In this document: positions 1,173 to 37,706 of the stretch, piece after piece
Layout: each line of letters starts with the position of its first letter
Numbering within the stretch: the stretch's first letter is position 1
Notes under the pieces: model-generated
What the model was told of the DNA's origin: nothing
Database searches by the model: none
The model's input: only the letters and a program-made list of their open reading frames with translations
Position numbers and translations under genes: made by a program
NCBI GenBank assembly: GCA_973895155.1
Contig: OZ316897.1
Coordinates: forward strand, 12,957,375 to 13,021,374
Direction: 5' to 3'
DNA length: 64,000 nucleotides
Source of the DNA: Marsupella aquatica
Taxonomy: Eukaryota; Plantae; Marchantiophyta

Positions 1173-3090
1173 TGTTTTTTCCAGAAAAAGAGTCTAAAGA
1201 GAGAAAATATTCAATATTTCACAAGAAAAATACAAATACCCCAACTTATTTTGTAGGATACCCTAAAGTGTAATTTGCACGTGTTTGAATTAATTTGAAA
1301 TAATTTCTCACTCACTTCAGTAATTCAACAAAAACATTTTGAACATTATCATGTGATACATAAAATCATTCACATATGAATTATGTTTTTAAAATATTCT
1401 AACAAAATTCATATTTTTTCTCCACTTTTTGAAATTTAAAAACTATTTGGTCCTTCATTTTTGTATACAATATTTTGAAAATTTTCAATCCTTGAAATCA
1501 CAAGAATTCTACTCATGAGTGAAAACTCACAAAATATTTCCTACACCGAACAGAAAAAATTCAAAGAGCAAAACATAACGTTCAAGCAAGATTGAGAGTA
1601 AAACACATTTATATACCAAATCAATGAAGAAGCAAAAAAAGTTGACCAAAATAAATCATCTTGAAAAGTGTGAATGTTTTTTTTCTCTCCTTACATAGTT
1701 TTTTTTTCTCTGTACGGTTCCGTAAAGTGAAAATTTCTCCCCTTATCTACAAGCCAACCAGAAATGTCCAACTGTACTTTTTGTTGGCTCATAGACACTG
1801 GGAGAAAATTTGTACTTTACTCAGCCAATACTTTTAAGTTTCAAGGAAAGAAGAGGCCAACCTGAAGGATTAGGTTAGTCATCTGGGAAGAATGTTGTTA
1901 CTCCATATCTATGAGTTTCAACCATGGCCAAGTAAGTCTGCATGTTGGTTCAACTCCTCCATTGATGGATTTACTCTTCCCAATGGATTTGACTCGTTTA
2001 TCATTGGGACATGGGCCTTGATCACAAGAGACAAGCACCTCCTTCTTGCCTTCTATTTTTATGAAATTTATTAGTCCACTCTAATTGAGATAGGGAGTAT
2101 ATCATTCTGAGGTGGGTGGGATCCTCAAAGGACAAATCGTGCATCCCTCAATGGCAAAATTAGAGATGTTATGGAGCAACTAGAGGCCTGGTGTTGACTG
2201 CTGAACAAACAATTACCCCCAAATGTTGACATGCTTAAAGTTACTAATTATATAGGTCTACAAGTCCTTTATACCTCTACATCCTTCAATGCTTGTCTTT
2301 TGGATTGGAAAATATTGGGCATCCAAGCACAGGATAGTATTGGGCTTAAAAGTGTCTTTCTTGTTGAATCATGATGAAAATGTTTATGTTTGTGCATCCT
2401 GCAATGCTTGTCTTTTGGACAATATTGGCCTTAGAAGTGCCTTTCTTGTTGAATCATAATGAAACTGCAAGTACTCCTCAAGGTTGTAAGAGCTGACAGT
2501 TTATTTCTTTGCAGGTTCTACAAAAACACTCTTGTGCCACTACTCTCAATGGAACGTTAATATATTTACTAATGTGTCAAAAATATTTATAACTGACTCT
2601 TTGGTAGAAGTTTTGGGATTCAAAATGATCAGTTCCATCCAGGCTATGATAGAGACATTATTGTGAAGTTTGAACAGTCCAAAGTCTTTACCAACCATTA
2701 CACAAGATAGATTAATAAATAGCAATTTATGTCAACTTTGAAATGAACTCTCAATCACATTACTTAAAATCAAAGTACACTTTGTTGCCTCCAAACTCAA
2801 AGATAAGTAATTTTTGCCTTAAATACTAATTCTTGATGATTAGCAAGCTAGATAAAAAATAACTATTGGAGGCTATCCGGTATCCAACAATGTTTTCTTC
2901 TGTGATCCTTCCAAGCCATTGCATTTCTATCGTCTCTTGTAGAGTGTATAACCTGAAAATCCTGAAAAAACAACATGATATATTCACATTAATGATACTG
3001 AGAAAAAACAATACGAGTTTCCACAATACAATTAACACATGCAACAGTTGAAAAATTACCTTGTTGAATCTTATCAGAAGATAATAATCC

Positions 3091-6041: not shown

Positions 6042-7898
6042 TAGGGTTGGATTGTCAGATTGCTTTCACTCACATAGCCACTCTGTATCCTTTTTAATAC
6101 ATATTATGATTTCATGGCAGCATTGTTAACCTACTATCGCCTTATTGTAGACATCTTGAAAAGCCTTACATACTACAGTAAAGCATCTCAAAGCTTGGTA
6201 TCCAGATTGAGCTTCGGCCATAACTGTAACTCAAGACTTAGATATATAGAAACTTTACAAAAGTTGTATGAGGTCAGGCAAGGGAATCCACATGAAGAGA
6301 CCAGAGCATCTAATGGAGAGCAATAGAGCAATAATTAGCACGCTGAGAAAAGCAAAATAATGTCTTGAGAATTCCTTATACAAAAGTTGACCAAAAGACC
6401 AATGACTTAGTATGCCAATGATTTACCATTTAATTACTCTACTCTCCTAAATGCAGGTGTACATTATGATCAGAACTGTGATGAGTGCAATATGATTTCA
6501 TTTTACTCAGCAGAACTAAAGAATGTTTTTGCTTCAAAGCTTTGGCTGGCTGCACACAAGCCTATGATGCTAGACACTCCATTTGTTCCTCATACTAATC
6601 AGCGTTGATGGAAAATACCATGGCTGCTACGGTTTGAAGTGTGTACTAAGGGTCTTCCTCTTGAGCTAAGAAAACATGTACAAACTTGCTTCAACACGCT
6701 TGCAATAAAAAAACTCATTGGTCGGTAGTCGATCTTGAAGTGGCCAAACTTTCAAGATTCCCCAATGCTTTCATCAGTTAATTGTTTTGTTGCACTAAAA
6801 TGCAAAAGAAGGAAACACCTGAATCAGGATTGGGGCTCATCCGGGGGCTCATCTTGCATACCACAAGTAAGCTTTGGAGCATCAATCACCCCACCTGTCT
6901 CTGCTCCATATCTACTGGAGTTTGTTTGGAATCATGTCACCTATAACTCCAGGGTCATAGGAAGTGCTTTTCTCAAAATGGCCAACAACCAACCTTGATC
7001 AGCAGGGTCAGTGGATGTCAATTCGAGGGCTGCGTCCTGGGGCCATGATTACCTGGTAATGAGCATCAAGTATTCCACTTGCAGTGATTCCATCACAGTC
7101 ACTAGGAGTTTGGTTCCAGTAAGGCTCATTCTGGAGTCAGGGCTGTAAGTGAGAGTAATATGGAGAGAAGAGGGCCATTGACCTGTTGGAGTGGATTGGA
7201 TTGATAGGGTCATTCCACTGTAGTTTCAAAGAAAAAGCATCTCCAAAAATCTATTGGCAAGGTGTTGACAGATAAACAAAAGGACTGCCCACAACAAGGC
7301 AGACAAACAGAACACCACCAGAAGCGCACAACAAAAACCATGTTGGTCAAAAATTGAAAGGATGCGGTACAAAATGCACAACCAAGAAGAGCAATCATTT
7401 GCAGCCCATAGCCTCATTCAGAACATGCTTTCATAGATCTTACATATGCATGCTGTGCAATACTAATTTCATACGTACACCTACAAACTAACCCCCACCC
7501 ATGCTAACATGTAAGAAATTGAATAATTATTAAACTAAAGTGATCTATGGCCAAGGAAACTCAAAGGATGCACGTACTTGAGTCACCATGGGGTGAAGAC
7601 GAGCTGTCATTGGGCTGGGTTTGAAACTCAGAAGTCGAAGGGTTTCCCAATTGAGGTGACGAGCTCGTTAATGGAGATGACAAATTAGAGGATCTTCTTG
7701 ACAGATTTTGCGGGGCTTCAAACCAGAACAATGCAATAAGCAATTAGATACCTAATTCGATCAATTACATAGAAGCTACACTATATAATCCATAAAGCTT
7801 CATGGTGTATTTTTCACATCAATGGAGCTAGAAATGATTTACCTGTTACTCAATATTACTTGTGCATCGATCAAGACAAATGAAGTTGATATCCTTAC

Positions 7899-9085
7899 CT
7901 GTCAAAGTTATTGTGGGGTCATGCAAGTTTTCTGTCTCCTCAATCCCTTCAGACTCAGAAGCTGCAAAGCTCGAGTTTGAGCTCTCTCTTTGAGTGTTAG
8001 AATTCCATGACTGTGAAGGACTTTGGGCATGTTCTGTTTCATTTTCAAATGCCCGACGATGCTCTGTCGTTGGAGAATCTTCTGAATAGACAAAAGTTTC
8101 AATTAATATGCAAATCATATCCAAAGACTTGCTGGGAAAGAGCAGAAAAATGTCATAATCTAAGAATCTAGTAACAATGATGACAAAAATGTTTGCTTGC
8201 TTTACCTGGACGTGCAGTCGAGTGACCATGGATATTTCGTCTGGTATCTCGTTTACGTCGACGTGTTCCTTGTGAAGGCACAATAATTGTTGCACCTGAA
8301 CAACCAGCCGCCTCAACATGGTAATGTCTTATTTGTTGTGGCGTCATTTGACAAGAGGGGTCTGGAATGTATACTACTTTATCAAACCGAGACACGTTTC
8401 TCCATTTGGTGTCCCCCGATAGAAAATATGAATCTAGTGTTGCACCACCTAGTTTGTCCAGGTCGTCTCTGTGTTGCCCAACATTTGTCATTCTCAAAAA
8501 GCATCCTGATATGTCAGCGTAACCAGTATTTTGGGCCCATTCTTGAGATGCCACAATTTCCCGAATATGCCATTGAGCAGTATTTTCCTGGAATTGACCT
8601 CCATCATAGACACCACCCCAAGGCGTTGACCCAGGTAGACTAACATACATTGGAGGCCTGAATTTTTTCACTCTTCGCATGTAGCAACTCTGATTGCCTG
8701 TGTCCACTTGTTGTGCCTCCCAAATTTGTTGAGGACAATATATAGCACGACTCACTGGTTTATCATAATTCCTTCGATTGCAAATTATTGGAGGAGGTCT
8801 TGCAATCATCTGTCTCCTTCCTCTGTTTGCCGCACCTCCACCTCTGTTTCCTCCACCTCCACGTCTATTTGATCCACGTCCAGATTCTCCTTCAGGTTGA
8901 TAATTGTATTGGTGATACGAGGCTGGGAATGTTGGAAATTCATATAGTGGAAGTGTCACTGGCTCAGTAGTTTCCTGAGGACCCGATTGTGTACTAGTTC
9001 CTAGTGGGATCATCCTCGAATTTCTATTGTATCCTTGGACAGGGTTTCTCTGACGAGGATCTCGACTATCAGTAGGTTCATCCAT
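7899..9085 (-). CDS. Two spliced exons (9085-8206, 8081-7899) of an unknown protein with a Gly/Arg-rich N-terminus; possibly the 5' part of the HECT gene
   Basis: Long ORF from ATG 9085 (MDEPTDSRDP...GRGSNRRGGGGNRGGGAANRGRR..., then a globular-looking segment ending KVVYIPD). Donor CCAG|GTAAAG at 8206/8205 is in phase with the acceptor at 8081; next donor ACAG|GTAAGG at 7899. The connection across 6050-7750 is not resolved. Confidence 0.55.
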
Positions 9086-10249
9086 ATTGCAATTCTGAAT
9101 GCAACGCAAGATTGAAACCCAAGATCCAAATGGCCAAGAACCTGAGGCTCTGCTCTAGTTCATTACTACTTTTGCGAACAGAGTGCAAAGTGTCAAGCTC
9201 AAAGGTAGATATCACTGAGTAGTACAAATTATCTTATATTATGAGCAGAAAGTAATAGATGTTGTTAGAGTACAGCCGCCATTTCAAGAATTTGGTGAAC
9301 ATTAGTATCACATTAACTTCCAGTACATATCATATTTGTTAACAATCATCTCATCATAATGAAGACTAGCTACCGCAACTCTTTTTAGCCCTCGGATACA
9401 TAATTGCCAAAAGCGGGTTACCGTATTTCTTATTTTCTTTAGAAAGACACTGCTACGCATGTAAGATGATTGAACTATTGTAAACTATAGTATTGTAGCT
9501 AGTAGTACACTCCAAACTATTCAAAGTTAGAGACATGCATGAAAGAAATAAGTATTTTAAAATTGTGTCGATTATTAAGGTCCAGTTAGAAACATCCAAA
9601 ATTTATAATTAACAAGAACTTTACATGTCACCAAACAATTATGTTTGTTGGATTTGACATGTCAATGGTGAAGAGTGGGCATCGTGACTTATTCCCCAGG
9701 TGAAGGTTGGAAAAACTAGTGTGAAGAATATGATTGGTTCATGTGCACGAATGATACATATTTTTTGGTGCCAAATTCCAATAGAAAGTTCGATAGTAAA
9801 CGAGGCAATAGCTATTACAAAAAAATCCCTACCATTGATATCTATTGATGAATGGTCAGTAATTTGTAACATTGGTTAGTATGCATGAATTTAATTGTAA
9901 AAAACAAACATAATGTGGTAGCTTGTGTGACAGTTATAACGCATGTGGGATTCATGCCATTTGCCACTTGCAAAATGACAGTTAATGCTAGTGACAAATT
10001 GGGTTGAGCCTCTTATGGGATTCAGGGAGACGCTTCAATGATTTGTCATTCAATGCACCTCGATTCTCCCCCACATCGGCAAATACAGAATGCTCTCTCC
10101 CCATTTTTGGGTCCCACTTCAGTTTCAGGCCAGCCCCATTTTTGGGTCCCCGTTCAGTCTTGAGAAGGGCACACCGGCACAGATTCTGGAGGAGAATCTA
10201 ATGCTCGATTGTTTTAACTAGGCTATAATAACTGAATGTAGTCGGGTGG

Positions 10250-10600
10250 CCAAGGGAGGGAGGCGCAGGGCTGGCTGTGGCAGGGTCCGTGGCAAGTGGT
10301 GAGGCAGGCAAGGGCGCTGGGGCTCGCCGTGGCAGAAAGGAAGGAGGGCGGCATGTGGGCTGGCCGGGGCCATCGTGAGTGGTGAGGCAGGCGAGGGCGC
10401 TGGGGCTCGCCGTGGCAGAAAGGAAGGAGGGCGGCGTGCGGGCTGGCCGTGGCAGGAAGGAGGGAGGTAGCCGGGTGGCCGAGGGAGGGAGGGACTCAGG
10501 CGGCCAAGGGAGAGGGGCAGTCGTGCAGCCAAGGAGGAAGGGCTGGCCGTGGCAGGAAGGAGGGAGGAAGGTAGTCACGGCCGAGGGAGGGAGAGACTCA
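10250..10600 (+). repeat. GC/purine-rich degenerate short tandem repeat (GGCTGGCCGTGGCAGGAAGGAGGGAG-like units)
   Basis: Several imperfect copies, e.g. near 10328, 10410, 10441 and 10541. Confidence 0.75.
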
Positions 10601-10624
10601 ACCGGGAGTCGGTAGTCCCGCGCA

Positions 10625-13185
10625 TTCAGGGAGACGAGTCCCTGAATTGTCATTCAATGCACCTCGATTCTCCCCCATAGCCCACCGGAATACTCTCTCC
10701 ATTGTTGTGTCTCGCTTTCAAGCCAACCCCATTTTTGGGTCCCAGTTCAGTTTTGAGGAAGGCACAGATTTTTGATTGAGGAGTTCTAATGTTTGATGGT
10801 TTTAACTTATTCACAAATAATGTAAAACTATAATATTAATTTTAAAAATATCAATATATTTAATAAAAATATATAATTATTATAAAATATTAAATGGTAA
10901 TGAGCATGGAGAATTGACGCATAGAACTAGTGTGTGACCTAGTCGTATTGGAGGTCAGTTGAGACTAAGACGTGGCGTGTTCAAGGCACACGATGGGCAA
11001 CTTTTCTTTTCTTTGATTGAGGGCATGGAAAGGAATGAACTTTGGAGGGGGCGGGGGTGTCTCATTGTATTTGAAAATGAAAATGGTAAATGAGATATAT
11101 ATGGTTCAAGTAGTTTGGAGATAGCAAAAATAACAAAGGAAACACCCATGAGAGCCAGGGAGATAAATTAACCTCTTTTGTTAATTTCCTATACCTGCCC
11201 ATTGTTGTGAGGTGCCAATCATGTTCCTGGTGGGTAGTTGCTTTCAGTTTTAGGAAGAATCCAACAAAAGAGGTTAGAAGTCAAAAGGCAAACAATATTA
11301 GAGGTGGTGTTGACAAGAGAAGAAAAGCCTTGTGCAACAAGCTGAGAAACCAGTAAGACAAACGAAAGCCCCTATGAAAAAGGCACAAAACCAACCCAAC
11401 AGAAGGCCCCTATGAAGTCCAAAAGTGTGTGGTAGAGAAGACAACAGGGCCAGGAGTGGTAAGTGTGCTCCAATTGACAGGTTTTGAAAGTTTGCAAGGA
11501 ATTGGTGCAAGCATGGGTCTGAATTCTTTGAGTGTCTTGACAAATGTGTCAAGCACAACACCTTTGGTACACTTGTTTTCCAGGGTAGCCAACTTAGACT
11601 ATTTCCAACCTTGTATGTAGAAAAGATATGTGATTGAGTGATTAATTGTAGGGCGGTAGGCTGCCGTTGGCTTCTAGGTTTTCTATTGATTTGAAAACAA
11701 ATTTCATGAATAAAGTTTTGTTTCTTATACAATAAGATGTGTGCTTACCATAAATGGTTTAGGAGATAAATGGTTTTTTATGTGATCATGTCTCCTCAAC
11801 TTTTTTGTTGCTGCTATATGGCGCATCCTTGGTTCATATCCCCAAGTCCAATTTTTTTGGACATTATTTACGGACCCCCATGGGAAGTTCCTTCCAAAAT
11901 CCCTGGCACCATGTTGAGCCACATCAGCAGGAATGGCCACAAATAAGAAAATCCAGATGTGAAAGAAGAACAAAACCTTATGGTTCGTGTTTGTGACAAG
12001 GCAAAAAAAAACTGTCAATCCTAGTAACTGTAAAAATGAGAAAAAAAACTGAAGAATAAAGTTGAAACAAACAAAGAATGAGGTAAAGAGTACTTAACAC
12101 TTGGAAGTTCTAGAATTGATATATCAGTGTTTTGCATTAAATGTTAGATTTTTTTCTAATTTTAAAAGATTTTTAAATAAACACTGCTAGAGGAAGTAGA
12201 AACAAACTGTTGGGCTTCCAAGATTTTTTTATAAGTATTTGGTGAAGTAACAAATTGTTGGGTTTCCAAAGTTTTGTAATAAATATTTGATAAAGTAAAA
12301 ACAAACTGTTGGGTTTCCAAGCACTGGTAACCGCAGTAAGTTGTAGATGGTACGTTTTAGATGACTTGAGATGACAAAGGGAATGGCTTGATGACTTGAG
12401 ATAACATGACAAAGCTAATGGCTACCCTTATACTCTTAGATCTGGCAATTTACCCCTCACCCAAGCCAGTTTTTGGTGAATTTAGTAGGAATATTAAATC
12501 CCTCCTGCAAGTTACAAACAAATCCTGCTACTTACATTATTTGGCAATTCCTCCTACTAATAGATGGAGTAGACAAATGTCTTGCAGATTGGGAAACCCT
12601 TAAACCACAACTCCAGATATATATACCTGTAGCTCTCATTTCCACTATGAATGAAGGGATGGGCAAGAGTGTTCTTTCATTGATCCAATTTGTTGAATGT
12701 ATTCAAGTTTATCTGTCTCAGGGGGTCCTCATACTAATTTAATTTTTATGCCTGGCTCTGATGGGTGTCTCCTTTGTTATTTTTTCTATCTCCAAATTAC
12801 TTGAACCCCTCATATATATCTCATTTGCCATTTCCATTTTCAAATACAATTAGACACCCCCGCCCCCTCTAACGTTCATTCTTTTCCATGCCCTCAATCA
12901 AAGGAAAGAAAAGTTGCCTGTCATGTGCCTTGAACACGTCACCCCCTAGTCTCAACTGAGCTTCAATACCACTAGGTCACACACTAGTTCTATGCGTCAA
13001 TTCTCCATGCTCATTACCATTGAATATTTTAGAATTATTTTATATTTTATCTTAAAAAATATATTGATATTTTTAAAATTGATATTATAGTTTTATGTCA
13101 TTTTTGAATAAGTTAAAAACGTCAAGCATTAGAACTCCTCAAAAATCTGTGCCCTCCTCAAAACTGAAGGGGGACCCAAAAATGT
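10625..13185. mobile_element. Nested non-autonomous foldback/long-TIR (possibly Mutator-like) element
   Basis: ~440-bp arms ~10730-11170 and ~12740-13185 are inverted copies (e.g. ATGGTAATGAGCATGGAGAATTGACGCATAGAACTAGTGTGTGACCTAG vs its reverse complement at ~12972-13020). Related terminal sequence is also at ~10020-10220 and ~44893-45140. No TSD identified. Confidence 0.65.
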
Positions 13186-15374
13186 GGGGATTGGGACACA
13201 GGGTACATCTGGGAAATTGATAAATTCAGGCAAACATGAAGACAAACATTGATTTTTGACATTGGCAAGGGACTTTGTAGCTGAGGTGAACAGTTCTGTT
13301 GACAGACATGACATGTCTTATGCACAAAATTCAATGATAAACACCAGTTTGTCTCTAAATGTCAATGGTTTATAGTCTGAAAATCAACTTACACCTGAGC
13401 TTCAGAATATCATAACGAAATATCGAGTGAAGTTTTAAAGGAGTTGAGTTGGCCTTGACATTGATGCTACTGTTGAAGTGGCTCCTGATATTGGTGACCC
13501 AGGTGAAGAGCCAGCTCAACCCTCTTCTCTTGGGGCTGTACAATGTCTTGCAAGGATGAGACACATGGGACAGATTGTAGGAGAGTGAAAAAAATGTTAG
13601 TTTGTAGCTTATGTGAGACAACATCTACTATTCATAGTTGATTAAAGTGAATCAAAGAGATCTTGTTTGCTCAATGTGTTTCAAGAGTACCCCAAACTGC
13701 AAATGTGAGGAGGAGTTATAGATTTCTGAAGTTTACTCAATATTTGAATAGTATATGAAAGGAGTTATAAGGTTCTGAAGTTTTCTCAATGCTTGAATGA
13801 GTAGTAAGTTTTGTAAATTGTAATCAAATATTGTGCACATTTTTAGCGTTTTTATAAGCAAATTTTAACTATTGTCCATTCTTTGTTTTTAACTTTAAGT
13901 ATGTGTGACACTATTTGACTTGTGACCACAATTAGTGTCATATTATATTAGTGTCACACACCCTAATTACCGTCACTTACCTCAAATATAACCTCACAGT
14001 AATTAGAGTCTGTGAGACTACATACTGTAAAGAGTGTAGTTACCCTTGGAAATATTATAATGGATTAACTAGTAAAACATGCAAGCTGGGAAGCAAGGAA
14101 GCAATGGGGAACGATTGGCTAAAATGACACTAAGAGAAAATATATCTTTTTGAATTATAAGTGACCTGGCAATACTTCAGTTGTTAGTGGCCTATAGGTG
14201 TCATGCTAATTACAAGAGATTTAATCCCAAGATTTTTATAGATTACATAAAGACATGTTAGTGACTAGTCAAAAACTGAATCATGTAAATGTTAGTGACT
14301 AGTCAAAAAGTCACTCATGTGACCATGGTAGGTGAGTCCTAAGGAAGTCATATAAATAGCAGAAATAGACTTTAGTTGCAAGACATCTGTATACCTTACA
14401 CCCATTTCATGCAAACTAATTTAGACTACACATTTTTTCATGTACACTTGTGAAATAGTGTTTGAATTATTTGTATACCAACACTATATCTAATCACAAC
14501 ATTTAGTGTTATATCCATCGCTTTTCTAGGTCCACAGGCATAACAAAGTTACAACTTGAGAATTCCTCCAAGCACTATTTTTCCTCCTTCAACTTCTTCC
14601 CTCCTTTTGTATTTCAAACTTGTCTTTCTCAATGAATGTATTGCTCACTATGTTAGGGTACAAGGCCTTGGGGACAGTTTCATTGTTTTTTCACCAGAGC
14701 TAATTAATCTACCAGCCATGTAACATCCTAAGGCTAGATAGTGTACCAGGGCTCAAAAGGAAAGTCTAGAATTATTTCATGGTCGCTCGTTTATTCAGAA
14801 TTTATGCAGGTCTTTAGTGGAGTCTTCTCTATCTAATCACAGTTCACGTGCTTTTGATTCAAAGAAAGGTCCATCCAAAATGTTCCTTTCTTAATGCCCT
14901 TTGCAAGTTTTCCATTTGTATTTTTCAGGACATTCTTGGAGCATAATGCCCACCACAAGATTCGGATCATCTCTTGAGTAAGATTGTCCATTACTTTCAC
15001 TAAATCAAGAAAAAATAAAATCTCTCAAGCCTTTCAATATAATAAGGTTTTATTTGCCAAACCATTAGGGAAACAACCCCTCCAAATGCAAGCTAAAGCT
15101 CTCCTTTTTTGGTCATGTTCCATAATGCCAACTAAACATGACTTTACTACATACTTCTAAAGTCTATTTTTTGCCTTCAATATTGTGTTTGGTTTTTCAT
15201 GGTTTACTCTATTTTAATGATCCATGCTCCATATTTTTCAATATGGATGCTAAGGTCAGTTGTTCTTGAATATTTTCCAGAAGAGTTGGCATTATTTGCT
15301 CAATAATCTTGGAAACTTTTAGTCAATTTTATCAGTGCACATGTAGTCGTATAAAATTCAGGAGTCGTAGTGTT

Positions 15375-17060
15375 TCTTAAGTCAAATTTTGATTCTAAGC
15401 TTGGTTTCCCTGAAACTTTGCCAACATAGTCGTGGCTCTATCTTCCAAAATCTGGCAAAGTTTGAGTGCATTCCATGTAGCAAATGTTGCCCTACAAAAT
15501 TTGAGCAACTCGCAGCTTTTTATAAGTCAAATTTTGTCGATTTCATATCTCTTGATCATTTTGTTTTTTCAGTTTTGATTCTGAGCTCGGTTTTCCCTGA
15601 AACTTTGCCAGCACACTTGTGACTCTTTCTTCTAAAATCTGGCAAAGTTTGAGTGCATTCTGTGCAGCAAATGTTGCCCTACGAAATTCGAGCAACTCGC
15701 AGCTTTTTTTAGGTCAAATTTTATCGAGTTTGTATCTCTTGATCGTTTTGTTTTTTCAGTTTCAATTCTGAGCTCGGTTTTCCCTGAAACTTTGCCAGCA
15801 CGGTCGTGACTCTTTCTTCTAAAATCTGGCAAAGTTTGAGTGCATTCTGTGCAGCAAATGTTGCCCTACGAAATTCGAGCAACTCGCAGCTTTTTTTAGG
15901 TCAAATTTTATCGAGTTTGTATCTCTTGATCGTTTTGTTTTTTCAGTTTCAATTCTGAGCTCGGTTTTCCCTGAAACTTTGCCAGCACGGTCGTGACTCT
16001 TTCTTCTAAAATCTGGCAAAGTTTGAGTGCATTATGTGCAGCAAATGTTGCCCTATGAAATTCGAGCAACTCGCAGCTTTTTTTAGGTCAAATTTTATCG
16101 AGTTTGTATCTCTTGATCATTTTGTTTTTTCAGTTTCGATTCTGAGCTCGGTTTTCCCTGAAACTTTGCCAGCACGGTCGTGACTCTTTCTTCTAAAATC
16201 TGGCAAAGTTTGAGTGCATTCTGTGCAGCAAATGTTGCCCTATGAAATTCGAGCAACTCGCAGCTTGTTTTAGGTCAAATTTTATCGAGTTCGTATCTCT
16301 TGATTGTTTTGTTTTTTCAGTTTCGATTCTGAGCTTGGTTTTCCCTGAAACTTTGCCAGCACGGTCGTGACTCTTTCTTCTAAGATCTAGCAAAGTTTGA
16401 GTGCATTCTGTGCAGCAAATGTTGCCCTACAGAATTCGAGCAACTCGCAGCTTGTTTTAGGTCAAATTTTATCGAGTTCGTATCTCTTGATTGTTTTGTT
16501 TTTTCAGTTTCGATTCTGAGCTTGGTTTTCCCTGAAACTTTGCCAGCACGGTCGTGACTCTTTCTTCTAAGATCTAGCAAAGTTTGAGTGCATTCTGTGC
16601 AGCAAATGTTGCCCTACAAAATTTGAGCAACTCGCAGCTTTTCTTAGGTCAAATTTTATCAAGTTTGTATCTCTTGATCATTTTTTTTCTTTAGTTTTGA
16701 TTCTGAGCTCGGTTTTCCCTGAAACTTTGCCAGCACGGTTGTGACTCTTTCTTCTAAGATCTGGCAAAGTTTGAGTGCATTCTGTGCAGCAAATGTTGCC
16801 CTACAAAATTTGAGCAACTCGCAGCTTTTCTTAGGTCAAATTTTATCAAGTTCGTATCTCTTGATCATTTTTTTTCTTTAGTTTTGATTCTGAGCTCGGT
16901 TTTCCCTGAAACTTTGCCAGCACGGTTGTGACTCTTTCTTCTAAGATCTGGCAAAGTTTGAGTGCATTCTGTGCAGCAAATGTTGCCCTACAAAATTTGA
17001 GCAACTCGCAGCTTTTTTTAGGTGTCATTTTTTGGCAAAGTTTGAGTGCATTTCATCATG
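15375..17060. repeat. 187-bp tandem (satellite-like) array, ~9 units
   Basis: Unit starts at 15632, 15819, 16006, 16193, 16380, 16567 (exact 187-bp period), with near-identical central copies. A 12-bp inverted pair AAACTTTGCCAG / CTGGCAAAGTTT spans each unit junction. Confidence 0.95.
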
Positions 17061-17627
17061 AGAAAGCTGCCCTAGAAAATCGGAGAGAGTTACAGGTTTC
17101 CTTAGGTCCAATACTATCGATTTCAATCTCCCGATCACCATGGCGTTTGACAAGACCACCACCATTGTTGATGTGGATATTCTATTCACAATCTTCAACG
17201 GAGGAAGATTTGTAAGTGAAATAAGGCTTTCTGAATTTATCTCTTTGGATTAGGTTCTGTTATTTCAGTTTGTTTGTCCATGAGCTCATTATGCCCTGTC
17301 TGTTACAAGTCACTTTTACAGATGCAGCGTTGACTCTAAAATCAAGTCTCCCATTGCTAAGTTCGCGCACTGGATGACACCCTACCTGATACACCGTATC
17401 TTCAATTTTTAGGTATGTTACATACTACCATAGGAGAAATTTTGCGATTCATATTTTGTATGGTGGGCTAATGTTAGCTTTGTTGCTGTTTGCCGTCCAA
17501 CATAATTTTTGAACTAGGATGACAAGAATCCATTCTAAATTTAAGATTTTTCCTAGGTGATAGTCTTTCTATTGCACATAGTTTGACAAATCATTGAGAA
17601 TTTAAATCATTTTACAGGTTACTCAAT

Positions 17628-19322
17628 ATGGAAGGACTGAAAGACAAAATAAAAAAAAGAAGAAGTGAGACTCCAATTCTAAAGGTAATATATTTTCTCA
17701 CTACTAATATACTTTGAGATCAGAAAATGTTTGGAATATATTTGAAACCAGTACACATTTTGTGAGGCCAATTCATTGTCAGGTGAATATATTGATAGTT
17801 GACCTACTGGGGGGGCGTGACTTCCCGTATTGTGGAAGAAACCTCATTATCCGGTGGCCGATACAGTCTATATTCTATGGCTTTGTTTTGTGTCCGAAAT
17901 GTTTAGCATATTTGATACTCATCATAGGTTTATATTTGTTATTTTTACTGCAAATTTAAGATGAAACTCTTTTTTCTTTTATAGGGCAAAAAAACAGTGA
18001 AGGTATCTTCCGAGAGGTTCTCTGCAGCATCTCTTTATTTCTGTGAAATCATCAAGCTTGCTCAAAAAGCTGGTGGGAAAGTAGGACATTTTCATACAAA
18101 AATTCTATGTAAGTGGTTGTTGGGCGAATACTATCTTTTCGAATATGGAGTACAGATATTATCTGAGGGAAACCTAAAAGGAAATCAGTCAACCTTTTTT
18201 GATGGTTTTCACAGTTTAAGAAGAGATGGAAGTTGGATTGCTTGGTTTGATGAAAAAGAATGGAGTAGCATCAATCATATGATAATGAATCGTTACAATC
18301 TATCATCTGTTGGGAGAGGCTTATCAGATCGGATACAGAAGTTCCGAACTGATCCAGACATGTATCTAAGAAGTAAGAAAGATCATTACCAGAAATTTGG
18401 AAAATCCCGTATAAAGTTTACAAATTTCACCAAGAAATCTTCCGATTTTGTTGGTAGATTTTCCTCCAACTATTTGATTGAGGAAGATTTGGAAACACCT
18501 TGGGCAAATCGAATTATAGTCTGGAGACCGATGATCGAGCCTTTCTACAAGATGAATATTTCATCAAGAGTGGAGATTTGGATGGATGGTGATGAAATTG
18601 GAGGTCGGATGAAAGGAGGTGTTCCAGAGAAAGATAGATCTTTTGTTCAGTTGTTTGTGGAAGAAATATGGAATGATAAATATATAGTGAAGAGGTCAGA
18701 TACACGATCTGCATTGAAAAATGTCATGAGGGCAATTGGCCCATTAGTGAACTGGCGAGAAGGGAAAGGTAATCATTTTGTGAGCTTCTACCGTAACAAG
18801 TTGAAGATATCACAAACACAGGATCCTACTGTGGTTCAGTTAGAATTGCTCTATGAGCAATGTGCACATCGATTACTGTTTGAAATTATTTTTGTTCTTT
18901 TCTGTGAACACTTATGGCCAGTGGTGGAGAGTTTTATTGAGATTATGCCTCCAATGATGGAACTTAGCAGTGAGCTTTTGGCTTGTTTTTCAAAGCCTGA
19001 ACTCATGAAAAAAGCCATTCATGCATATCCTTTATTCATCACAAAGGACTATTGCAATGAAGTTCATACAGATGTAGATGAAAGCGAGTTTACAATGTTC
19101 ATGGCATGTAATCCATCGAATGAAAGTAGAGGTGGAGATTTAGTGATGCTAAAATATGGAATTAAAATTCCAATTTTAGATGGAGATTTGTTTTTTGTTC
19201 GGGGTCAAGATCCTCATGCTACATCGTATAGAAGTCCACCAATGAAACCAGTATATGTAGTTGGAATTGCCGTAAACCAAAAACTTGGCAATGCTTATGA
19301 GTTTCGCGGTGAAAGTAATTAA
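17628..19322 (+). CDS. TET/JBP-like Fe(II)-dependent dioxygenase (double-stranded beta-helix), ~464 aa, transposon cargo
   Basis: Exon 17628-17684 (MEGLKDKIKKRRSETPILK, basic NLS-like) splices in phase 0 to 17985-19322. The C-terminal ITKDYCNEVHTDVDE...GGDLVMLKYGIKIPILDGDLFFVRGQDPHATS...VVGIAVNQK carries the HxD...H iron triad. HATS resembles the HATT of animal TETs. Confidence 0.7.
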
Positions 19323-19751
19323 ATAAATTTTGTGATACACTGAGATTAGCTATGCGGGTTTTCTTTTGGTCTATTTTTTGTTTATTATTATGGTGGATTT
19401 GGTTATAATAGTGTACTATATATCCTGATGCTAAAGTTTTTAGTTTATCTTCTTGTTATAGAATTTTTGTTCATTGGTGCTTGTGGCTGTAATATGACTT
19501 GTGAGTTTTTAATAGGTTCAAGAAAGCCAATGAAAATTTTAAAAATGTCATCTGCTTCCAAATTGGGAATCATCAACAATTTTTTATGAACAGACAACGT
19601 TGGGGCCAAGCTTACAAGAGCAATAGTCAATTGCTGTAGAAAACAAAAATTGAATGACTACTGTTATTTGTATATGGTTGCAGGTGTTAAAATTGTTAGT
19701 TGATGAAACTGTGGAGTATAATCTATACTCAACCCACGCTGGACAATCAAT

Positions 19752-21423
19752 ATGAATGATCCAGATTTTCAACAGTATACAGATGTAAAAAGAGCTCTCG
19801 ACCTAGGGTACACTATGAATGAATGTGCAGATGCATTTGGTGTACATAGAGTGACTCTATGGAAATGCCTCAAAAACTTTGATATTGAGCATAGAATATA
19901 TCCCCGATATACTTTAGAAGATGTTTGCTCTCTTATTACCGAGATTGTACCAATCCATGGATATGCTGAAGATTGGGGAATACGTTTCGTTAGAGCACGT
20001 TTAAAAAGGGCTGGTTATAAAATCTCACTAGCACTTGTCAGAAATGCTTTGGACACATTACTTCCTGGTGTACTTGAAGGAAGGGCACGAAGATGCATCA
20101 TAAGGAGATTTTATGATGTAATTGAGCCAATGCATCTGTGGCATATGGATTGTAAGTAGAACATCTATGTCTCTTCTAAATTTTTCCTGCTTTTATATTG
20201 AAGTTAACTTTAGAATAGATCCTCAATACTAATAGATTGTTTGGAAATTGAATGCAGCGTATGATAAATTGACGCAATGGGGATTCAGAATTCATGGTGC
20301 AATTGATGGGGCTACACACTTTGTTCCATGGATGCATGTGGCATTGAACAAGAAAGCGCATACTCTATATGTGGGATATAAGACAACCATACTTAGATTT
20401 GGTCATCCATTGATGATTCGTTCTGATTATGCAACAGAGCATGTTTTGGTAAGAAGAAACCTTGAAAGAGCAAGACCAAGTACAAATTGTTTTTGCATGG
20501 GGTCTTCTGTTCATAATCAGGTAATGTTTCTGATTAACAAGAACATATAGAGTGGTTCATTTCATATTTCATGTCATCGATTGCAGCTTGGAAATTCTGT
20601 AAATTTGAAATCAATTTTGTGCAGGTACTTATATTTGTATCCTATCATGTATGTTTTGGCAGAGAATTGAGGCATTTTGGAACTACATGAAACAAAAAGG
20701 AACTAATCACTTCAAGAAGACTTTATATGACTTATCATGTGTGGAAGGATTTTTACAAATTGATATCCCACTTCATAGATATTGTATGGTTACTGTGATT
20801 CTTCCTTTACTACAAGAGGCTGTAAATGATGTGGTTTTAACATGGAATGCACATACTGTGAGAGCTGTGCGGATTGGAGGTATGTTGAGACCATCACATA
20901 TTCCAGAACTTGCATTTCAATCACGAGAAAGAGAAGCTAGAATTATTCAGCCTCCACCTTATGCCGAAGAAGCTCAGGTGGATATCGAACAAGAAGATGA
21001 CATCATCGATCCAATGGGAATTGATTATTGGAATCACAACAATGATCGTAGAAACTTTGAAGATCGCATAAACGATTTGAATGATGAAGTAAGCATTGTT
21101 TTGTATTATTATTAATGTTCATGTGAATTATGAAATGATGATGTAAGAAATACTTTTGTTTATATGCCCTTATTCATGTTTTATTTCTTTTGCAGAATCT
21201 ACAATACATTCGTGATATTGCATATGAAAGGAACCAAGTGACAGTCACAACTGCAAAAGACAAATTGCGAATGCATCTTCTTCTTTCTATAGAGTGTCAA
21301 AATAGTATGGATGCTTCATTGGACTTGGAGGACTATGTACAAAATGAATTAGGGCTACCTAATTTGTCAGATGGTAGATTATGGGCCTTAAGATCCTTGC
21401 AACAAACATTACAGATTATATGA
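19752..21423 (+). CDS. Integrase-fold DDE transposase (IS3EU-type), 438 aa, 4 exons
   Basis: Exons 19752-20151, 20258-20520, 20663-21088 and 21196-21423 join in frame (1317 nt, all GT-AG). N-terminal HTH (GYTMNECADAFGVHRVTLWKCL). Catalytic motifs WHMDSYDKL..WGFRIHGAIDG, PLMIRSD and GSSVHNQRIEAFW; later WNAH. Confidence 0.9.
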
Positions 21424-21574
21424 CTGACACAATATGTGAGGTAATGTAATAGTTTACTAGTGACACAAACACTTCTTCTTGAGGCTTTAGCAATATTCGA
21501 AGAAATTATTTTCTAGTCTATTGGCTTGAGAGATACTTGTTCATGTTTTGAGCCCATAATTTTGCTCTCATCCT

Positions 21575-24520
21575 AGTATTTAACCTAGCTTTGGACCCTT
21601 GTCTGAAAATGCCAATAATTAAATCCTTGATTTTTTTTCATAAATTTGCATCCAAGACTAAGCATGCCTGGTATTTTGATTCCAAATCCACTCTCACAAT
21701 GTTGGTTTGAAATTTCCTTGGCCAGTTGTGGTGGGGCAAGTTGATTCAAGTCCTTTGTATTTTGTTATAATGGTCCTCCTATTTACCCTAACTTTGGACC
21801 CTAACTAGCTTGTCTCAAAAAAATGCCAAGAACAAATCCTCAATATTTTGTTGTGTATTTATAGCATAGACTGAGCCCAATATTGTGATTCAAAATCCAC
21901 TTACACTTTGAAGGTTGAATCTTTCCTAATGGTGGTGGTGGAGCAAGTTCGTGATCTACCTTTGTATTTTTTGTCATGGTAGTCCCATTTACCCTACCTT
22001 TGGACCCTTGACTTGGACAATGTCAAGAAATAAATCTTCATTAATGTAATGTGTATTTACACCCTAGACTAAGCCCAGGACCAAGCTTGACCTGGTGATT
22101 CCAACTTTGCTCTCACTTTGTGGGTTCCATCTTTCTTTGCTCACTTGTTTGGTGGAGCTAGTTTCTTTATCGTCCTAAGTTGTATTTTTGTTATTTACTA
22201 TAAGTGACCCTAGCTTTAGACCCAACCTAGCTTGTCTGAAGAAACCAGATCCTCATAACTTGTTTATGTTGTACACCCTCCATTACAATGATTGTTGTCA
22301 TTGGACAAGCTCTCACTTTGTTGGTTTCACCTTTTTTAAGTCACTTCTGTAGTGGAGCAAGAGTATTCAAGTCATTTCTATATTTTTCTCTAGGAGAGCT
22401 TATTGTCCTTTAGGTCCTTGTCTCAAAATGCCAAGCGTCAAATCCTCATAATTTTGTCACAAGTTCACACCCTGGACTAAGCATGGTATTTTCATTCATA
22501 ATCTGCCTGTCACATTGCTGGTTTGACATTTTCTTGGTCAGTTGTGTGGTGGATCAAGTTTGTTCTCATCCTTTGTATTTTGGATATGATCTTCTCATTT
22601 ACCCTACCTTTAGACCTTGATTGAGCAAAATCCCAAGATACAAATCCCCATAATTTTGTTGAGTATTTACACCCTTAGTAGACTGAGCCTGGCTTGGCTC
22701 ATTCCAAATCCACTCTCACTTTGCTGGTTCAGCATTTTCTTGGCCAGTTATGTGGTGCACCAAGTAGGTCCAAGTCCTTTGTATACTTGTCATGGTCTTC
22801 CCATTTAACCCTAACTTTGACCGTTATTTTAAGAAAATGCCAAGACACAAATCCTCAAAATTTATTTGTGCTTTTCACCATATGCTCAGACTAATTATAT
22901 TGTGATCAGATATCTGCTCACTTTGTTGGTTTCATTTTTCCTTAGCCATTTGTGTGAGGGAGCATGTTTGTTCAACTCCTTTGTAATTTGGTTATGATGC
23001 TCTCATTTACCCTAGCTTTGGAACCTTGTTTCAAGTAAATGTCAAATACAAATCCACCTAATTTCTCCATTTATTTACACCCTTGATTGAGCCTGGTCCT
23101 GTGATTTCAAATCCACTCTCATTTTGCTGGTTGCAGATTTTCTTGCTAAGTCATGGAATGGAGTGAGTTTGTTCAAGTCCTTGTTAATTGTGTTATAGTT
23201 CTCCTATAATTTACCCTATTTGACTTTGGACTCTTGTCAGATTAGGGAAATGCCAAAACACAAATGTTCATTATTTGTTTTTGTATTTAAACCTTAGGCT
23301 GAGCCTCATATTGTGAATCAAAATTGTTGATTTTCATTTTTGTTCTTTAGTCAATTGTGTGGGGGAACAAGTTTGTTCTTATCCTTTGTATTATTTTTCA
23401 TTTTGATCTTCACATTTACCCTAGCTTTGGAGCCTTGTTAGAAATGTCAAGATACAAATTCACATAATTTCTCCATTTATTTACACCTTTGATTGAATCT
23501 GGTTTGGTGATCTCAAACCCACTTTTATTTTGCTGGTTGCACATTTTCTTGGGCAGTTGTGGGATGGAGCTCGCTTATTTAAGTCCTTGGTATTTGTGTT
23601 ATGGTTCTCCCATTTACCCTACTTGACTTTGGGCCTTTGTCATAGAAAAATGCCAAGAAACAAATGCTCATGGTTTTTTTTTTGCATTTACACCTCATGC
23701 TGAGCCTCATAATGTGAATCAAAATCAGTTCTCCCTTCGTTGATTTCATTTTTCCTTAGTTAGCTATGTGAGGGAGCAAGTTTGTTCACGTTCTTTGTAT
23801 TTTGGTAATGATCCTTCCGTTTACCCCACTTAACTTTGGAGCCTTGTCTAAGAAAAATGCCAAGAAACAAATTCACATGATTTATTTGTGTATTTACCCC
23901 TCAGGCTAAGCCTGATATTGTGATTTGAAATGTGCTCTCACTTTATTGGTTTCATTTTTCATAAGTCAGTTGTGTAGGGGAGAAAGTCATTTGTATTTTG
24001 GTTAATATGAGCTTCCCATTTACCTTAGCTTTGGATCTTTCTTTCAAAAAAATGTCAAGAAGCAAATTAACATAACTTTCTACACCCTAGATTTAGTGGG
24101 CCTTGGTGATTCCAAATTTGCTCCCACTTTGCTGTCAGTTTGACATTTCTTTGGCCAATTGTGTGGTGGTGCAGGTCAATTCAAGTCCTTTGCATTTTTG
24201 TTGTGCTCTTCCCATTTACCCTAGCTGTAGACCATTGTCTTAATAAAATGCTGAGAAACAAATCGTCATATTTTCTTTGTGTATTTACACCATAGAGCGA
24301 TACCCAAATGTGTTCAAGTTGTTTGTATTTCTAAACAGTGTTGGTATTTACTCTAGTCTGGACCCCTTTGAAAGAAATTGCCAAATAATAAATGCTGATA
24401 GTTTCTTTGTGTATTTTTTAAGAGACACAGCATGACCGACCTTGTGATCTCAAATTGGTCCTGACTTTGGTGGTTCTACCTTTCCTTGAACTGTTGTTGT
24501 TGTGGAGCAAGTATGTTGAA
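21575..24520. repeat. Old degenerate ~200-bp tandem array, ~14-15 units
   Basis: The anchor CATTTACCCTA(G/A)CTTTGGA..TTGT..AAAATGCCAAG recurs near 21580, 21782, 21988, 22205, 22598, 22804, 23006, 23211, 23416, 23613, 23820, 24019 and 24215. Confidence 0.85.
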
Positions 24521-25447
24521 GCCTTAGTTACGCCTTTTTTTCTATGGTGATGGTTAGTCATAAAATGTGGTTAAGGTTAATGTTTACAAAACTAGCTTAT
24601 TTATCAATTAGTTATGAATTAAAGTGTCAATGGACCAGGGTAGTATGAACAAAGTATCACGAGGGTTTGATGTGAAAGGGGTTCCAAGAAACACAGATAG
24701 ATAGCGATAGACCACATTATCCTTACCAGAATAAAAGTTATTTTTTTTAATAAAATGAGTTAAGTTCATATAGTCATCTGGGCAGTTTGTTAAGCATTTA
24801 AGTGCATGAGTTTTAATTAGTTCCTATTTATTCCCTATTTAGAAATTGGATAATTAGTTTTTCAATGTGTACAGTAGTTTGTTCAACGAATCACTCCCCC
24901 CCCCCCCAAAAAAAAAAACTCCCGCTTGAAAACTATTGCATGTTTCTCTCTTGAGAATGAAAACCATTTTTTAGTTCTCTAAAATAAAATAAAACCTTGG
25001 TGGTGGTGTATATTTTGTGTGTTATTTTTTCTGGATGTGCATTGTTTTTTGGGGTGACTTTTTCGGGAGAAGGTATTTTTTCCGTGGAATTTGTTCTCCC
25101 TTCAAAATGTTCCATTTTTGTTATTCCCCTAACTATCATTTGGAGTAAAACTTTTTACTTTCTCCAATATCTCAAAATTAATTTTCTCTGTAGAATTTTT
25201 TGAATTTTTTGCTCTTTATTGAATGCTTCAAATATTTCTCACCTTATAATATTTCCAATTTTTTCCGATGTTGTGTTTGAGAAGAAAAATTTTAATTACA
25301 CTATTTAGTGACCCATTTGATTATTTTTACGCATTACTAGTTATGTAATTCTGTTTTTCTCCCTTTATCTTTCAGTTTCGAATACTCTCTTTTCAGACTC
25401 TTTTCCGCAGATATTTTCTCTCGGTTCAACTTTTTAGCCGATTCTCT

Positions 25448-25471
25448 CCCCGCAACATTTCAAACACCGTA
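25448..25471 (-). repeat. Right terminal inverted repeat (24 bp), followed by putative TSD GTCGAC 25472-25477
   Basis: 23/24 identity to 1149-1172 in inverted orientation. Confidence 0.9.
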
Positions 25472-25613
25472 GTCGACACCTTTTCGTGCGGAGAGGCTGC
25501 ATGGGGCCATTGGGGCGGTTATCATCCGACTATAAAATAGCTTATTGCAGGTCGGGGACGGCACAGGCAATTTTTACAGGCGAGGAAAGCTTCCCTTGCC
25601 CGCTCCGACCGAA

Positions 25614-37620: not shown

Positions 37621-37706
37621 TCTTTATGAGCCTCAATCTTGTCTTTCGTCCTGAAACCAAAGTAACAAAGCACCCACTAGTCCACCTCCTATAGGAGCAC
37701 AACATC

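Follow-up and report, generated by a model that had tools for sequence, protein, structure and literature searches.

An apparently intact gene for a putative TET/JBP-like dioxygenase carried by an IS3EU/GingerRoot-type transposon in a liverwort

In the window, a 64,000-nucleotide stretch of contig OZ316897.1 of the liverwort Marsupella aquatica, we found a gene that we read, with somewhat more confidence than doubt, as an apparently intact gene for a TET/JBP-type Fe(II) dioxygenase, carried as cargo by a complete 24.3-kb IS3EU/GingerRoot cut-and-paste transposon. On this reading the protein is probably catalytically active and may enter the nucleus, as its basic first exon suggests, where it would flip a modified DNA base, most likely 5-methylcytosine, and then oxidise it. 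Fungal transposon-borne TETs have been proposed to aid escape from methylation-based silencing (PMC12730594), and by analogy base oxidation would weaken such silencing of the liverwort transposon.

The initial annotation had taken 17628–19322 as a single open frame. A gene does occupy this span, but nine in-frame stops lie between 17628 and 17997, and the gene is instead modelled with two exons and an intron:

17628..17684, + strand, predicted exon 1 (57 nt, ATG, 19 codons, basic KKRR cluster)
17685..17984, + strand, predicted intron (300 nt, GT..AG, GTAATA donor at 17685, pyrimidine tract before the acceptor)
17985..19322, + strand, exon 2 (1338 nt, 445 codons plus stop; N-terminal helical bundle and TET/JBP-like double-stranded beta-helix domain)

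The two predicted exons give a spliced protein of 464 aa. Residue numbers used here take position 17997 as the start of the open frame, and those of the spliced protein are higher by 23. Because the conserved frame opens right at the acceptor and contains no ATG before codon 95, an upstream exon with an ATG is required, and 17628–17684 is best read, from the sequence, as this exon. The frame remains open over 445 codons in DNA of ~36 % G+C and a full-length homologue is 53 % identical (E 8e-153), so a chance frame is excluded. The gene is apparently intact. Of the ~330-aa N-terminus previously described as unrecognised, about 100 aa fall in the predicted intron; the truly unrecognised part is a helical bundle of ~115–130 aa.

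Four public runs, from two organisms, contain multiple copies of the sequence, and the best-supported variants listed from these runs, an in-frame 3-nt insertion included, leave the TET frame open. Those contigs of the runs that cover the predicted intron are unspliced and therefore represent DNA; no splice junction at this intron was among the joints listed for them, and no RNA record carrying the TET-like sequence was found among the public runs.

The family of the protein is tiny and carries no annotation. The exhaustive search recovered 31 relatives among 1.8 billion representatives, and a word-indexed homologue search gave one match with the sequence and two with the profile. The members span 20–60 % identity, and many of them are fragments on short contigs, maybe decaying copies. 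One metagenome relative, L001, has a matching HATVFR...VY...N pattern, and no recognisable transposase was seen within its 2.3 kb downstream. Relatives were found neither in phage genomes by tblastn nor in a scan of viral contigs.

Several searches point to the TET fold. Pfam gave no 2OG family match at all for the protein of the window; among its relatives the sole 2OG families touched were Tet_JBP (PF12851, best E 2.9e-4) and 2OG-FeII_Oxy_6 (PF20515, five members, best 1.4e-3), both below the gathering cut-offs, so that no curated threshold was reached. A single-sequence query of PDB sequences returned nothing relevant, and the family profile matched CMD1 alone at E < 1 (0.076), with HxD..GG..HGT in register. 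Tet_JBP was the assignment of 25 of the 30 nearest Atlas clusters by language model (score 0.96); the N-terminal 190 aa used as a language-model query had no usable match. The predicted model of the full protein had a pLDDT of 74.5 and a pTM of 0.79, and that of the domain alone a pLDDT of 79. Foldseek placed CcTet at the top (6e-7 to 8e-7), followed by CMD1 (2.5e-5) and NgTET1 (2.7e-5), with AlkB (1.8e-4) and PHD2 (5e-4) behind. The structural alignments cover 200–250 residues for TET/CMD1 against ~170 for AlkB, and the former reach elements N-terminal of the barrel. A structure search of the kind suggested in the initial annotation thus ranked the TET types ahead of AlkB and the prolyl hydroxylases by E-value. 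Its TET/JBP-like assignment holds, as the Foldseek top three, the CMD1 profile match, the sub-threshold Pfam families and the language-model neighbours all agree. The models predict a very divergent relative of TET enzymes with a TET/AlkB-type fold.

The residues on which the functional argument turns are the following:

18693..18695, + strand, R233 (in 10 of 10 covering members; candidate counterpart of TET2 R1261 / CMD1 R244)
19065..19073, + strand, HTD iron-binding motif (H357, D359), then the invariant D361 (from the family columns; the profile pairs the HTD motif with CMD1 H345/D347)
19215..19232, + strand, H407-A-T-S-Y411-R412, third iron ligand (H407 codon 19215–19217) and a family-specific aromatic-Arg pair
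19251..19277, + strand, strand VIII, V419 to N427 (V419, 2OG-arginine position; A425, base-stacking aromatic position; N427, base-reading His/Arg position)

The HTD...H(ATS) triad noticed earlier is present and invariant or nearly so across the family: in the alignment of 25 members H357 was found in 24/24, D359 in 23/24 and H407 in 20/20. By the family profile the three residues align to CMD1 H345, D347 and H397. GG and DGD motifs around the putative metal site are also conserved. After the third ligand, T409 is kept in 16 of 20 members, column 411 is Y, F or W in 13 of 18, and column 412 holds R in 13 and K in two of 19.

The last strand of the protein reads PVYVVGIAVNQK. We fixed its register by truncating the model at N427 and reading off the structural partners of this last residue. 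N427 pairs with TET2 H1904 (five entries), NgTET1 H297 (three), CMD1 R418 (three) and CcTet R393, and also with AlkB 212, ABH2 256, ABH3 277, PHD2 391, FTO 324 and ALKBH5 285. From this pairing V419, eight residues upstream, falls on TET2 R1896, NgTET1 R289, CMD1 R410 and CcTet R385; we take the same position to be AlkB R204, PHD2 R383, FTO R316 and ALKBH5 R277. The distal carboxylate of 2OG is contacted by the strand-VIII arginine in TET2 (R1896), NgTET1 (R289), CcTet (R385) and JBP1 (R255), and to our knowledge such an arginine serves throughout the solved TET, AlkB, FTO and prolyl-hydroxylase structures. Family column 419 is V in eight members, A in seven, T in three and Y in one, and never R or K. 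The register that the initial annotation had set against TRISLVFYQHK was thus right, and the arginine is replaced family-wide (V419 in the window).

Base stacking and base reading are done by Y1902/H1904 in TET2, F295/H297 in NgTET1, F416/R418 in CMD1 and F391/R393 in CcTet. The A425 column consists of A, T, V or S, and column 427 is N in 16 of 19 members. Two strand-VIII features of TETs, the 2OG arginine and the stacking aromatic, are therefore absent from the protein, and the His/Arg base reader has become N427. Because all three are replaced, the use of 5mC and of 2OG should not be assumed.

R233, R412 and R402 are conserved basic residues which, judged from the family columns, could hold 2-oxoglutarate in place of the strand-VIII arginine. 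The second arginine of related enzymes (TET2 R1261 / CMD1 R244), of which R233 is the candidate counterpart, contacts 2OG and stacks on the flipped base; the region of R233 is poorly modelled (pLDDT ~50). Column 402 holds R in 13 and K in two of 23 members. R412 is not invariant, the position being non-basic in four of 19 members that nevertheless keep the triad, and a parity argument suggests that Y411 points inward and that R412 may not, the strand ending at 409–410. JBP offers no precedent for R412, since the co-substrate arginine of JBP1, R255, lies 16 residues past H239. The predicted pocket appears remodelled, with a lining of small or aromatic residues (F347, Y352, A370, L382, Y411, V419 and V421). 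Across the superfamily the basic residue that anchors 2OG has often moved to a different strand, for example in JmjC enzymes and FIH. We slightly favour continued use of 2-oxoglutarate or a different 2-oxoacid, whose proximal carboxylate would be held by R233 and whose distal one by Y411/R412 or by R402.

The gene lies within a transposon, a context that the initial annotation had missed, with the following parts:

1143..1148, no strand, left target-site duplication GTCGAC (same hexamer at the right flank)
1149..25471, + strand, complete IS3EU/GingerRoot-type DNA transposon of 24,323 bp carrying the TET-like gene (terminal inverted repeats, ends, duplication)
1149..1172, + strand, left terminal inverted repeat, starting TACGG
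3091..9109, − strand, HECT ubiquitin-ligase-like cargo gene, multi-exon (Pfam HECT E 5.8e-9 at 3091–3786; more minus-strand ORFs)
15387..17023, no strand, tandem array of a 187-bp unit in 8.8 copies that are 95 % alike, inside the element, with the TET-like gene following 600 bp downstream
19752..21423, + strand, transposase gene of the integrase-core DDE type, four exons (19752–20151, 20258–20520, 20663–21088, 21196–21423)
25448..25471, − strand, right terminal inverted repeat, ending CCGTA
25472..25477, no strand, right target-site duplication GTCGAC

The ends were found by an inverted-repeat search at 1–45 kb; a search confined to 13–26 kb found none. The terminal inverted repeats are 24 nt long with one mismatch and end in TACGG..CCGTA. 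The 6-bp GTCGAC stands on both sides with unrelated flanks beyond, although it is palindromic and so could belong to the inverted repeat. The published signature of IS3EU consists of TA..TA termini, TAYGG..CCRTA in the TET-carrying families, and 6-bp duplications (PMC12730594), and we assigned the element to IS3EU/GingerRoot because its ends and 6-bp duplication match it. The transposase gave Pfam rva_4 hits on exons 2 and 3 (E 2.7e-14 and 2.7e-7). All its introns are GT..AG, and the exons total 1317 nt, or 439 codons, with the spliced frame intact. Its catalytic residues, located by eye, are the D of WHMD, the D of RSDY and the E of RIE, with D, D, 34-residue, E spacing. The contigs of the public runs contain one odd joint, 20158–20277, with no match to the predicted transposase intron. 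The TET-like gene sits between the transposase and the HECT gene, and the latter is opposite in orientation to the transposase. From these features the transposon is structurally complete and apparently autonomous.

Several other explanations have to be weighed against the reading of a TET-like oxidase that still uses a 2-oxoacid. The protein might use no 2-oxoglutarate but, like CMD1, ascorbate or another small molecule, a fragment of which would be attached to the base; the resulting hypermodified base would mark or shield the transposon. The replacement of the distal-carboxylate arginine in every member speaks for this, as do CMD1 being the best sequence-level PDB match, the alignment of its ascorbate-contact threonines T337 and T399 with the conserved T349 and T409, the small or aromatic, uncharged pocket positions and the dispensability of a basic residue at 412 in four of 19 members. 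However, CMD1's own solution is not seen here (W358→A370, S335→F347, S414→G423), CMD1 keeps its arginine in sequence and only turns it away, and the 2OG anchor is often relocated in the superfamily, as in JmjC and FIH, so we regard this explanation as a tentative one and on balance unlikely. We consider it more doubtful still that the TET-fold family has left 2-oxoglutarate by a route other than that of CMD1 and makes a novel hypermodified base with another co-substrate, a plant transposon then carrying the enzyme and a ubiquitin ligase as a self-sufficient kit for evading or rewriting host methylation silencing.

The protein could also be a TET relic that has lost its catalysis but binds DNA, and that the transposon retains because it serves targeting or protection. 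In line with this, the arginine for the co-substrate is gone, together with the aromatic that stacks and the His/Arg that reads the base, and many members are short-contig fragments and perhaps decaying copies. In a protein that only binds DNA the metal-site residues should be free to drift, but H357, D359, D361 and H407 are invariant or nearly so at only 20–25 % identity, and T409 and the GG and DGD motifs near the metal are conserved as well, which makes a relic improbable. The catalytically altered DNA binder raised in the initial annotation lost ground on the same invariance of the triad among members 20–25 % identical. We give as little credit to an AlkB-like or other non-TET dioxygenase (acting in alkylated-base repair, RNA or 6mA demethylation, or as a protein hydroxylase) whose likeness to TET is the shared fold only. 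Prolyl hydroxylases do come close behind in Foldseek, and CcTet, the best-matching TET, acts on 6mA too. Nevertheless, E-values are better by one to three orders of magnitude for CcTet, CMD1 and NgTET1, the TET/CMD1 alignments are longer (200–250 against ~170 for AlkB) and extend N-terminal of the barrel, the sub-threshold Pfam matches are to TET families only, AlkB R204 is likewise missing here, and the transposon context fits published TET cargo.

TET homologues in plants have been stated to be unidentified (PMC11233409), and demethylation in plants has been attributed to glycosylases of the ROS1 type (PMC11065753). A TET-like cargo of an apparently autonomous transposon in a land plant would extend the fungal strategy, in which the transposon carries the TET, to plants, and such an enzyme is a candidate source for the disputed oxidised methylcytosines in plant DNA. 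With its iron site kept and its 2OG arginine gone, the family is a natural experiment in co-substrate choice, and the precedent of CMD1 indicates that a lost arginine-2OG contact can create new DNA chemistry. The copy at 1149–25471 unites an open TET frame, an intact-looking transposase and near-perfect ends, and is thus a good one for cloning.

Among known systems, AlkB/ALKBH proteins differ from the present protein in a shorter aligned region, the lack of any sequence-level signal and the strand-VIII R204, which has no counterpart here; we know of no transposon association of this kind for AlkB. With NgTET1, human TET2 and Coprinopsis CcTet the protein shares the fold over 190–250 residues, the iron triad and, at the C-terminal end, the strand-VIII register residue for residue. 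The strand itself differs, being R-x5-[FY]-x-[HR] in those enzymes and [VAT]-x5-[ATV]-x-N in the family here. Unlike them, the protein has no Cys-rich or low-complexity insert and has a family-specific helical N-terminal bundle of ~115–130 aa. CcTet R385A is dead, whereas the corresponding arginine is naturally absent here.

Among solved structures, CMD1 of Chlamydomonas reinhardtii (PDB 7cy4–7cy8) gives the best match at the sequence level, with HxD, GG and HGT in register, and resembles the protein in that the canonical arginine-to-2OG contact is unavailable and in conserved threonines at +2 from the last His and −8 from the first. Its ascorbate contacts are R244, H249, S335, T337, W358, T399 and S414 (PDB 7cy4–7cy8). 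Two of the five that can be mapped are kept (T337=T349 and T399=T409, profile alignment), and S335→F347 and W358→A370 (profile alignment) and S414→G423 (strand register) are changed. In CMD1 R410 is retained but turned aside, and W358 blocks the site, whereas the protein here has valine in place of the arginine and alanine in place of the Trp; CMD1 also keeps F416 and R418, in place of which we find A425 and N427. Moreover, CMD1 is described in the papers as a host gene, in contrast to the transposon cargo reported here.

Fungal transposon-borne TET/JBP dioxygenases go back to Iyer et al. 2014, as cited in PMC11233409 and PMC12730594. TET-carrying IS3EU elements in the literature are from fungi only (PMC12730594), with families in rust fungi and Tuber (Kojima 2025, PMC12730594). 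The host here is a liverwort and no fungus, the partner cargo is a HECT ligase where the fungal elements have an alpha-kinase, and the Pfam thresholds, which the fungal types pass, are not reached by the protein here. As in the fungal elements, the TET-like gene is cargo, the ends are of the TAYGG..CCRTA type with 6-bp duplications, and the TET gene lies between the transposase and an oppositely pointing second cargo gene.

The initial annotation had treated 17628-19322 as a single open frame, a reading that had to be abandoned, as translation of the stretch between 17628 and 17997 contains nine stops and the long open frame covers only 17985/17997-19322. From the DNA we could read a two-exon model with a predicted spliced product of 464 aa:

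17628-17684, + strand, predicted exon 1: ATG at 17628, 19 codons, last codon AAG at 17684
300 nt ending at 17984, + strand, predicted intron: donor GTAATA, pyrimidine tract and TATAG at the 3′ end
17985-19322, + strand, exon 2: 445 codons, stop at 19320-19322

An ATG exon upstream is required, since the conserved protein starts right at the acceptor and has its first internal ATG only at codon 95. The exons were kept separate in all searches and the spliced sequence was never used as a query; residue numbers follow the frame from 17997, and those of the spliced protein are higher by 23. The window is eukaryotic in look, with sparse open frames and a G+C content of 35-50%, and its contents include tandem arrays, a Harbinger-type transposase with a Myb partner and a HECT fragment.

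The feature at the TET-like locus is real, and the protein is conserved and very rare. The word-indexed search recovered a single homologue, P0001 (479 aa, 53% identity, full length, E 8e-153), and only 31 relatives turned up when 1.84 billion representatives were scanned exhaustively with HMMER, three of them below 1e-30 and 17 below 1e-10; the majority are nameless fragments from short assembled contigs. One extra relative, L001, came from a metagenome contig. The HxD...H iron triad, initially described as intact in this one protein, is kept across our 25-sequence family alignment (H357 24/24, D359 23/24, H407 20/20), in which H357, D359 and D361 (24/24) are the nearly invariant columns. Elsewhere R233 (10/10), Y352 (21/23) and N427 (16/19) stand out. 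L001 itself occupies positions 4-915 of the soil or environmental contig Ga0066793_10026251, is 42% identical to the window protein, shows the family's pattern as HATVFR...VY...N, and has no recognisable transposase in the 2.3 kb downstream.

Searching Pfam with the window protein gave no match to a 2OG family. Of the 25 family members, five matched 2OG-FeII_Oxy_6, the fungal TET-like family (best E 1.4e-3), and two matched Tet_JBP (best E 2.9e-4); no other 2OG family was touched, and these matches all stay under the curated cut-offs. The top match of the family profile among all PDB sequences was CMD1 (E 0.076), whose HLDTDD...GGEF...HGT is in register with the family HxDxD...GG...HGT. Of the 30 clusters closest to the protein in a language-model search of the Atlas, 25 were Tet_JBP (score 0.96).

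The AlphaFold2 model built from the family alignment (pLDDT 74.5, pTM 0.79) comprises a helical bundle (10-138) and a double-stranded beta-helix, joined by a linker of poor model quality; in the beta-helix, H357 closes strand II, H407 opens strand VII and strand VIII spans 420-424. Foldseek against PDB ranked CcTet (6e-7) before NgTET1 (5.5e-5) and CMD1 (1.5e-4) for the full-length model, with thymine hydroxylase, anthocyanidin synthase and PHD2 at lower ranks (2e-4 to 5e-4). The domain-only model (residues 185-427, pLDDT 79) again put CcTet first (7.7e-7), followed by CMD1 (2.5e-5), NgTET1 (2.7e-5), AlkB (1.8e-4) and FTO (3.5e-4). Alignments of TET, CMD1 and CcTet to the full-length model cover 225-252 residues from residue ~117-133, and that of AlkB about 165-175 residues from ~190. 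Judged on these predicted structures, the search places the protein among nucleic-acid base dioxygenases, and sequence-level signals then pick TET/JBP among them. The proposed TET/JBP-like class is thus upheld by the agreement of the Foldseek order with the Tet_JBP, 2OG-FeII_Oxy_6, CMD1-profile and Atlas signals; the structure search did not group it with prolyl hydroxylases or any other 2OG family that acts on something else than nucleic acids. The N-terminal bundle (window 17997-18410, residues 1-138) has a pLDDT of 80-95, is kept in several family fragments and had no match in Pfam, PDB sequences or the Atlas. This bundle may serve as a module, specific to the family, that binds DNA or chromatin.

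The domain-only model ends exactly at N427 (model residue 243), and the last aligned pair could be taken from the structure alignment.

Residues of solved enzymes paired with N427
TET2: 1904 (five entries)
NgTET1: 297 (three entries)
CMD1: 418 (three entries)
CcTet: 393
AlkB: 212
ABH2: 256
ABH3: 277
PHD2: 391
FTO: 324
ALKBH5: 285

Counting back along strand VIII from this pairing sets N427 on His/Arg, A425 on Tyr/Phe and V419 on the arginine. The eight-residue offset also meets the arginines of AlkB (R204), PHD2 (R383), FTO (R316) and ALKBH5 (R277). The pattern common to TET2, NgTET1, CMD1 and CcTet is R-x5-[FY]-x-[HR]. R1896, Y1902 and H1904 are used in TET2 and R289, F295 and H297 in NgTET1, and R410, F416 and R418 are present in CMD1 (PMC7854593); CcTet uses R385, F391 and R393, and its R385A mutant is dead (PMC11040006). 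JBP1 needs R255, 16 residues past H239 (PMC1874643). The family columns read V8/A7/T3/Y1 at 419, A7/T6/V5/S1 at 425 and N in 16 of 19 at 427, with no conserved basic residue at 417-424, and strand VIII of L001 has the same pattern. The suspicion that the 2OG arginine had been replaced was therefore well founded and the alignment register right: the model-based pairing with ten solved enzymes, together with the column counts, confirms the loss at residue level and across the family.

Several conserved residues are candidates to stand in for the arginine. The alternative of a different co-substrate, as in CMD1, draws on the alignment of the ascorbate-contacting threonines T337 and T399 with the conserved T349 and T409. 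However, CMD1's own solution is not copied, as W358, the plug of its 2OG site, pairs with A370 in a V/S/A/C column. We lean slightly towards relocated 2OG binding, by analogy, because the basic anchor has already shifted within this superfamily, in the JmjC and FIH enzymes. Strand VI ends in one candidate replacement, R402 (R13+K2 of 23). Another candidate is the pair of Y411 (aromatic in 13/18) and R412 (R13+K2 of 19), which is specific to the family and directly follows strand VII, but four members that keep the triad lack R412, which is less constraint than an essential anchor ought to show. By strand parity Y411, not R412, might point into the predicted barrel, although the strand already stops at 409-410 in both models. 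R233, a further candidate in a weakly modelled region, is possibly the counterpart of TET2 R1261 or CMD1 R244. A catalytically dead binder is argued against by the invariant triad.

The gene is cargo of a transposon with the following parts:

1149-25471, IS3EU/GingerRoot-type element, 24,323 bp, from its ends and 6-bp duplications
19752-20151, 20258-20520, 20663-21088, 21196-21423, + strand, transposase gene in four exons, from DNA and Pfam rva_4
3091-9109, - strand, multi-exon HECT-like gene (Pfam HECT 5.8e-9)

A wide inverted-repeat search gave arms at 1143-1172 and 25448-25477. Both ends consist of GTCGAC followed by a 24-nt repeat beginning TACGG, with one mismatch, and the flanks outside the hexamer are unrelated. 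These ends are the published IS3EU/GingerRoot signature of TA..TA termini and 6-bp duplications (PMC10045372, PMC12730594); the fungal TET-carrying families have TAYGG..CCRTA termini (PMC12730594). Immediately 3′ of the TET-like gene, in the same orientation, three ORF pieces match rva_4 (integrase core), and the DNA reveals them as exons of the one transposase gene. All transposase introns are GT..AG, the exons sum to 1317 nt (439 codons), and the acidic residues are D (WHMD), D (RSDY) and E (RIE), with 34-residue spacing. In this copy the TET frame is open, the transposase looks intact and the ends are near-perfect.

Inside the element, ~600 bp upstream of predicted exon 1, lies a 187-bp tandem array (15387-17023, 8.8 copies, 95% alike), which may serve in regulation or in transposase binding. 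Between it and the HECT gene is a nested ~3.1-kb insertion (10096-13190). Its inverted arms are long and imperfect (up to 238 nt, 86-92% complementary), and at 10198-10653 it holds a repeat region rich in G+C and in Pro/Ala. Right beside the element, a ~13-kb unit (25614-38705) with inverted repeats of ~550-660 bp (97-99% complementary) carries a DDE_Tnp_4 (Harbinger/PIF) transposase (27689-28924) and, on the opposite strand, a Myb/SANT-like gene (29612-30661). The unit has the look of a young transposon of Harbinger type whose ends are unusually long.

The element stretch, whole or in part, was found in six public runs under three organisms, none on record as RNA. In the four runs compared (two organisms, all contigs) it is present as many short, slightly differing contigs, and so is a multi-copy repeat in those two organisms. 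The best-supported TET-gene variants among those listed are substitutions and one in-frame 3-nt insertion: in all four runs the other copies carry an additional ATC after 18596, a point at which P0001 is likewise longer by a residue. Other copies, again in all four runs, lack 2 nt at 20648, a harmless difference as it falls inside the predicted second transposase intron. By these two differences the window copy is a somewhat derived representative of a multi-copy family.

An open gene with an invariant metal site, a predicted TET/AlkB-type fold and a remodelled co-substrate and base pocket thus sits in a structurally complete transposon. The basic first exon, itself predicted, suggests that the enzyme would enter the nucleus, where a modified base may be flipped out of DNA and oxidised or otherwise modified. 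5mC would be the most probable target in view of the family and of the part this base plays in transposon silencing, but the target may differ, since the stacking aromatic is lost and His/Arg is changed to Asn. Such modification would work against the element's silencing, a role proposed for fungal transposon-borne TETs (PMC12730594). In all fungal TET-carrying IS3EU families, as Kojima reports (PMC12730594), the TET gene has the transposase on one side and, on the other, an alpha-kinase gene in opposite orientation; the layout here is the same, with the HECT gene in the alpha-kinase place. We classify the gene with the TET/JBP dioxygenases carried by transposons, of which the published cases are all fungal. 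The active site departs from that of every solved relative, and the interesting part of the locus is the enzyme chemistry.
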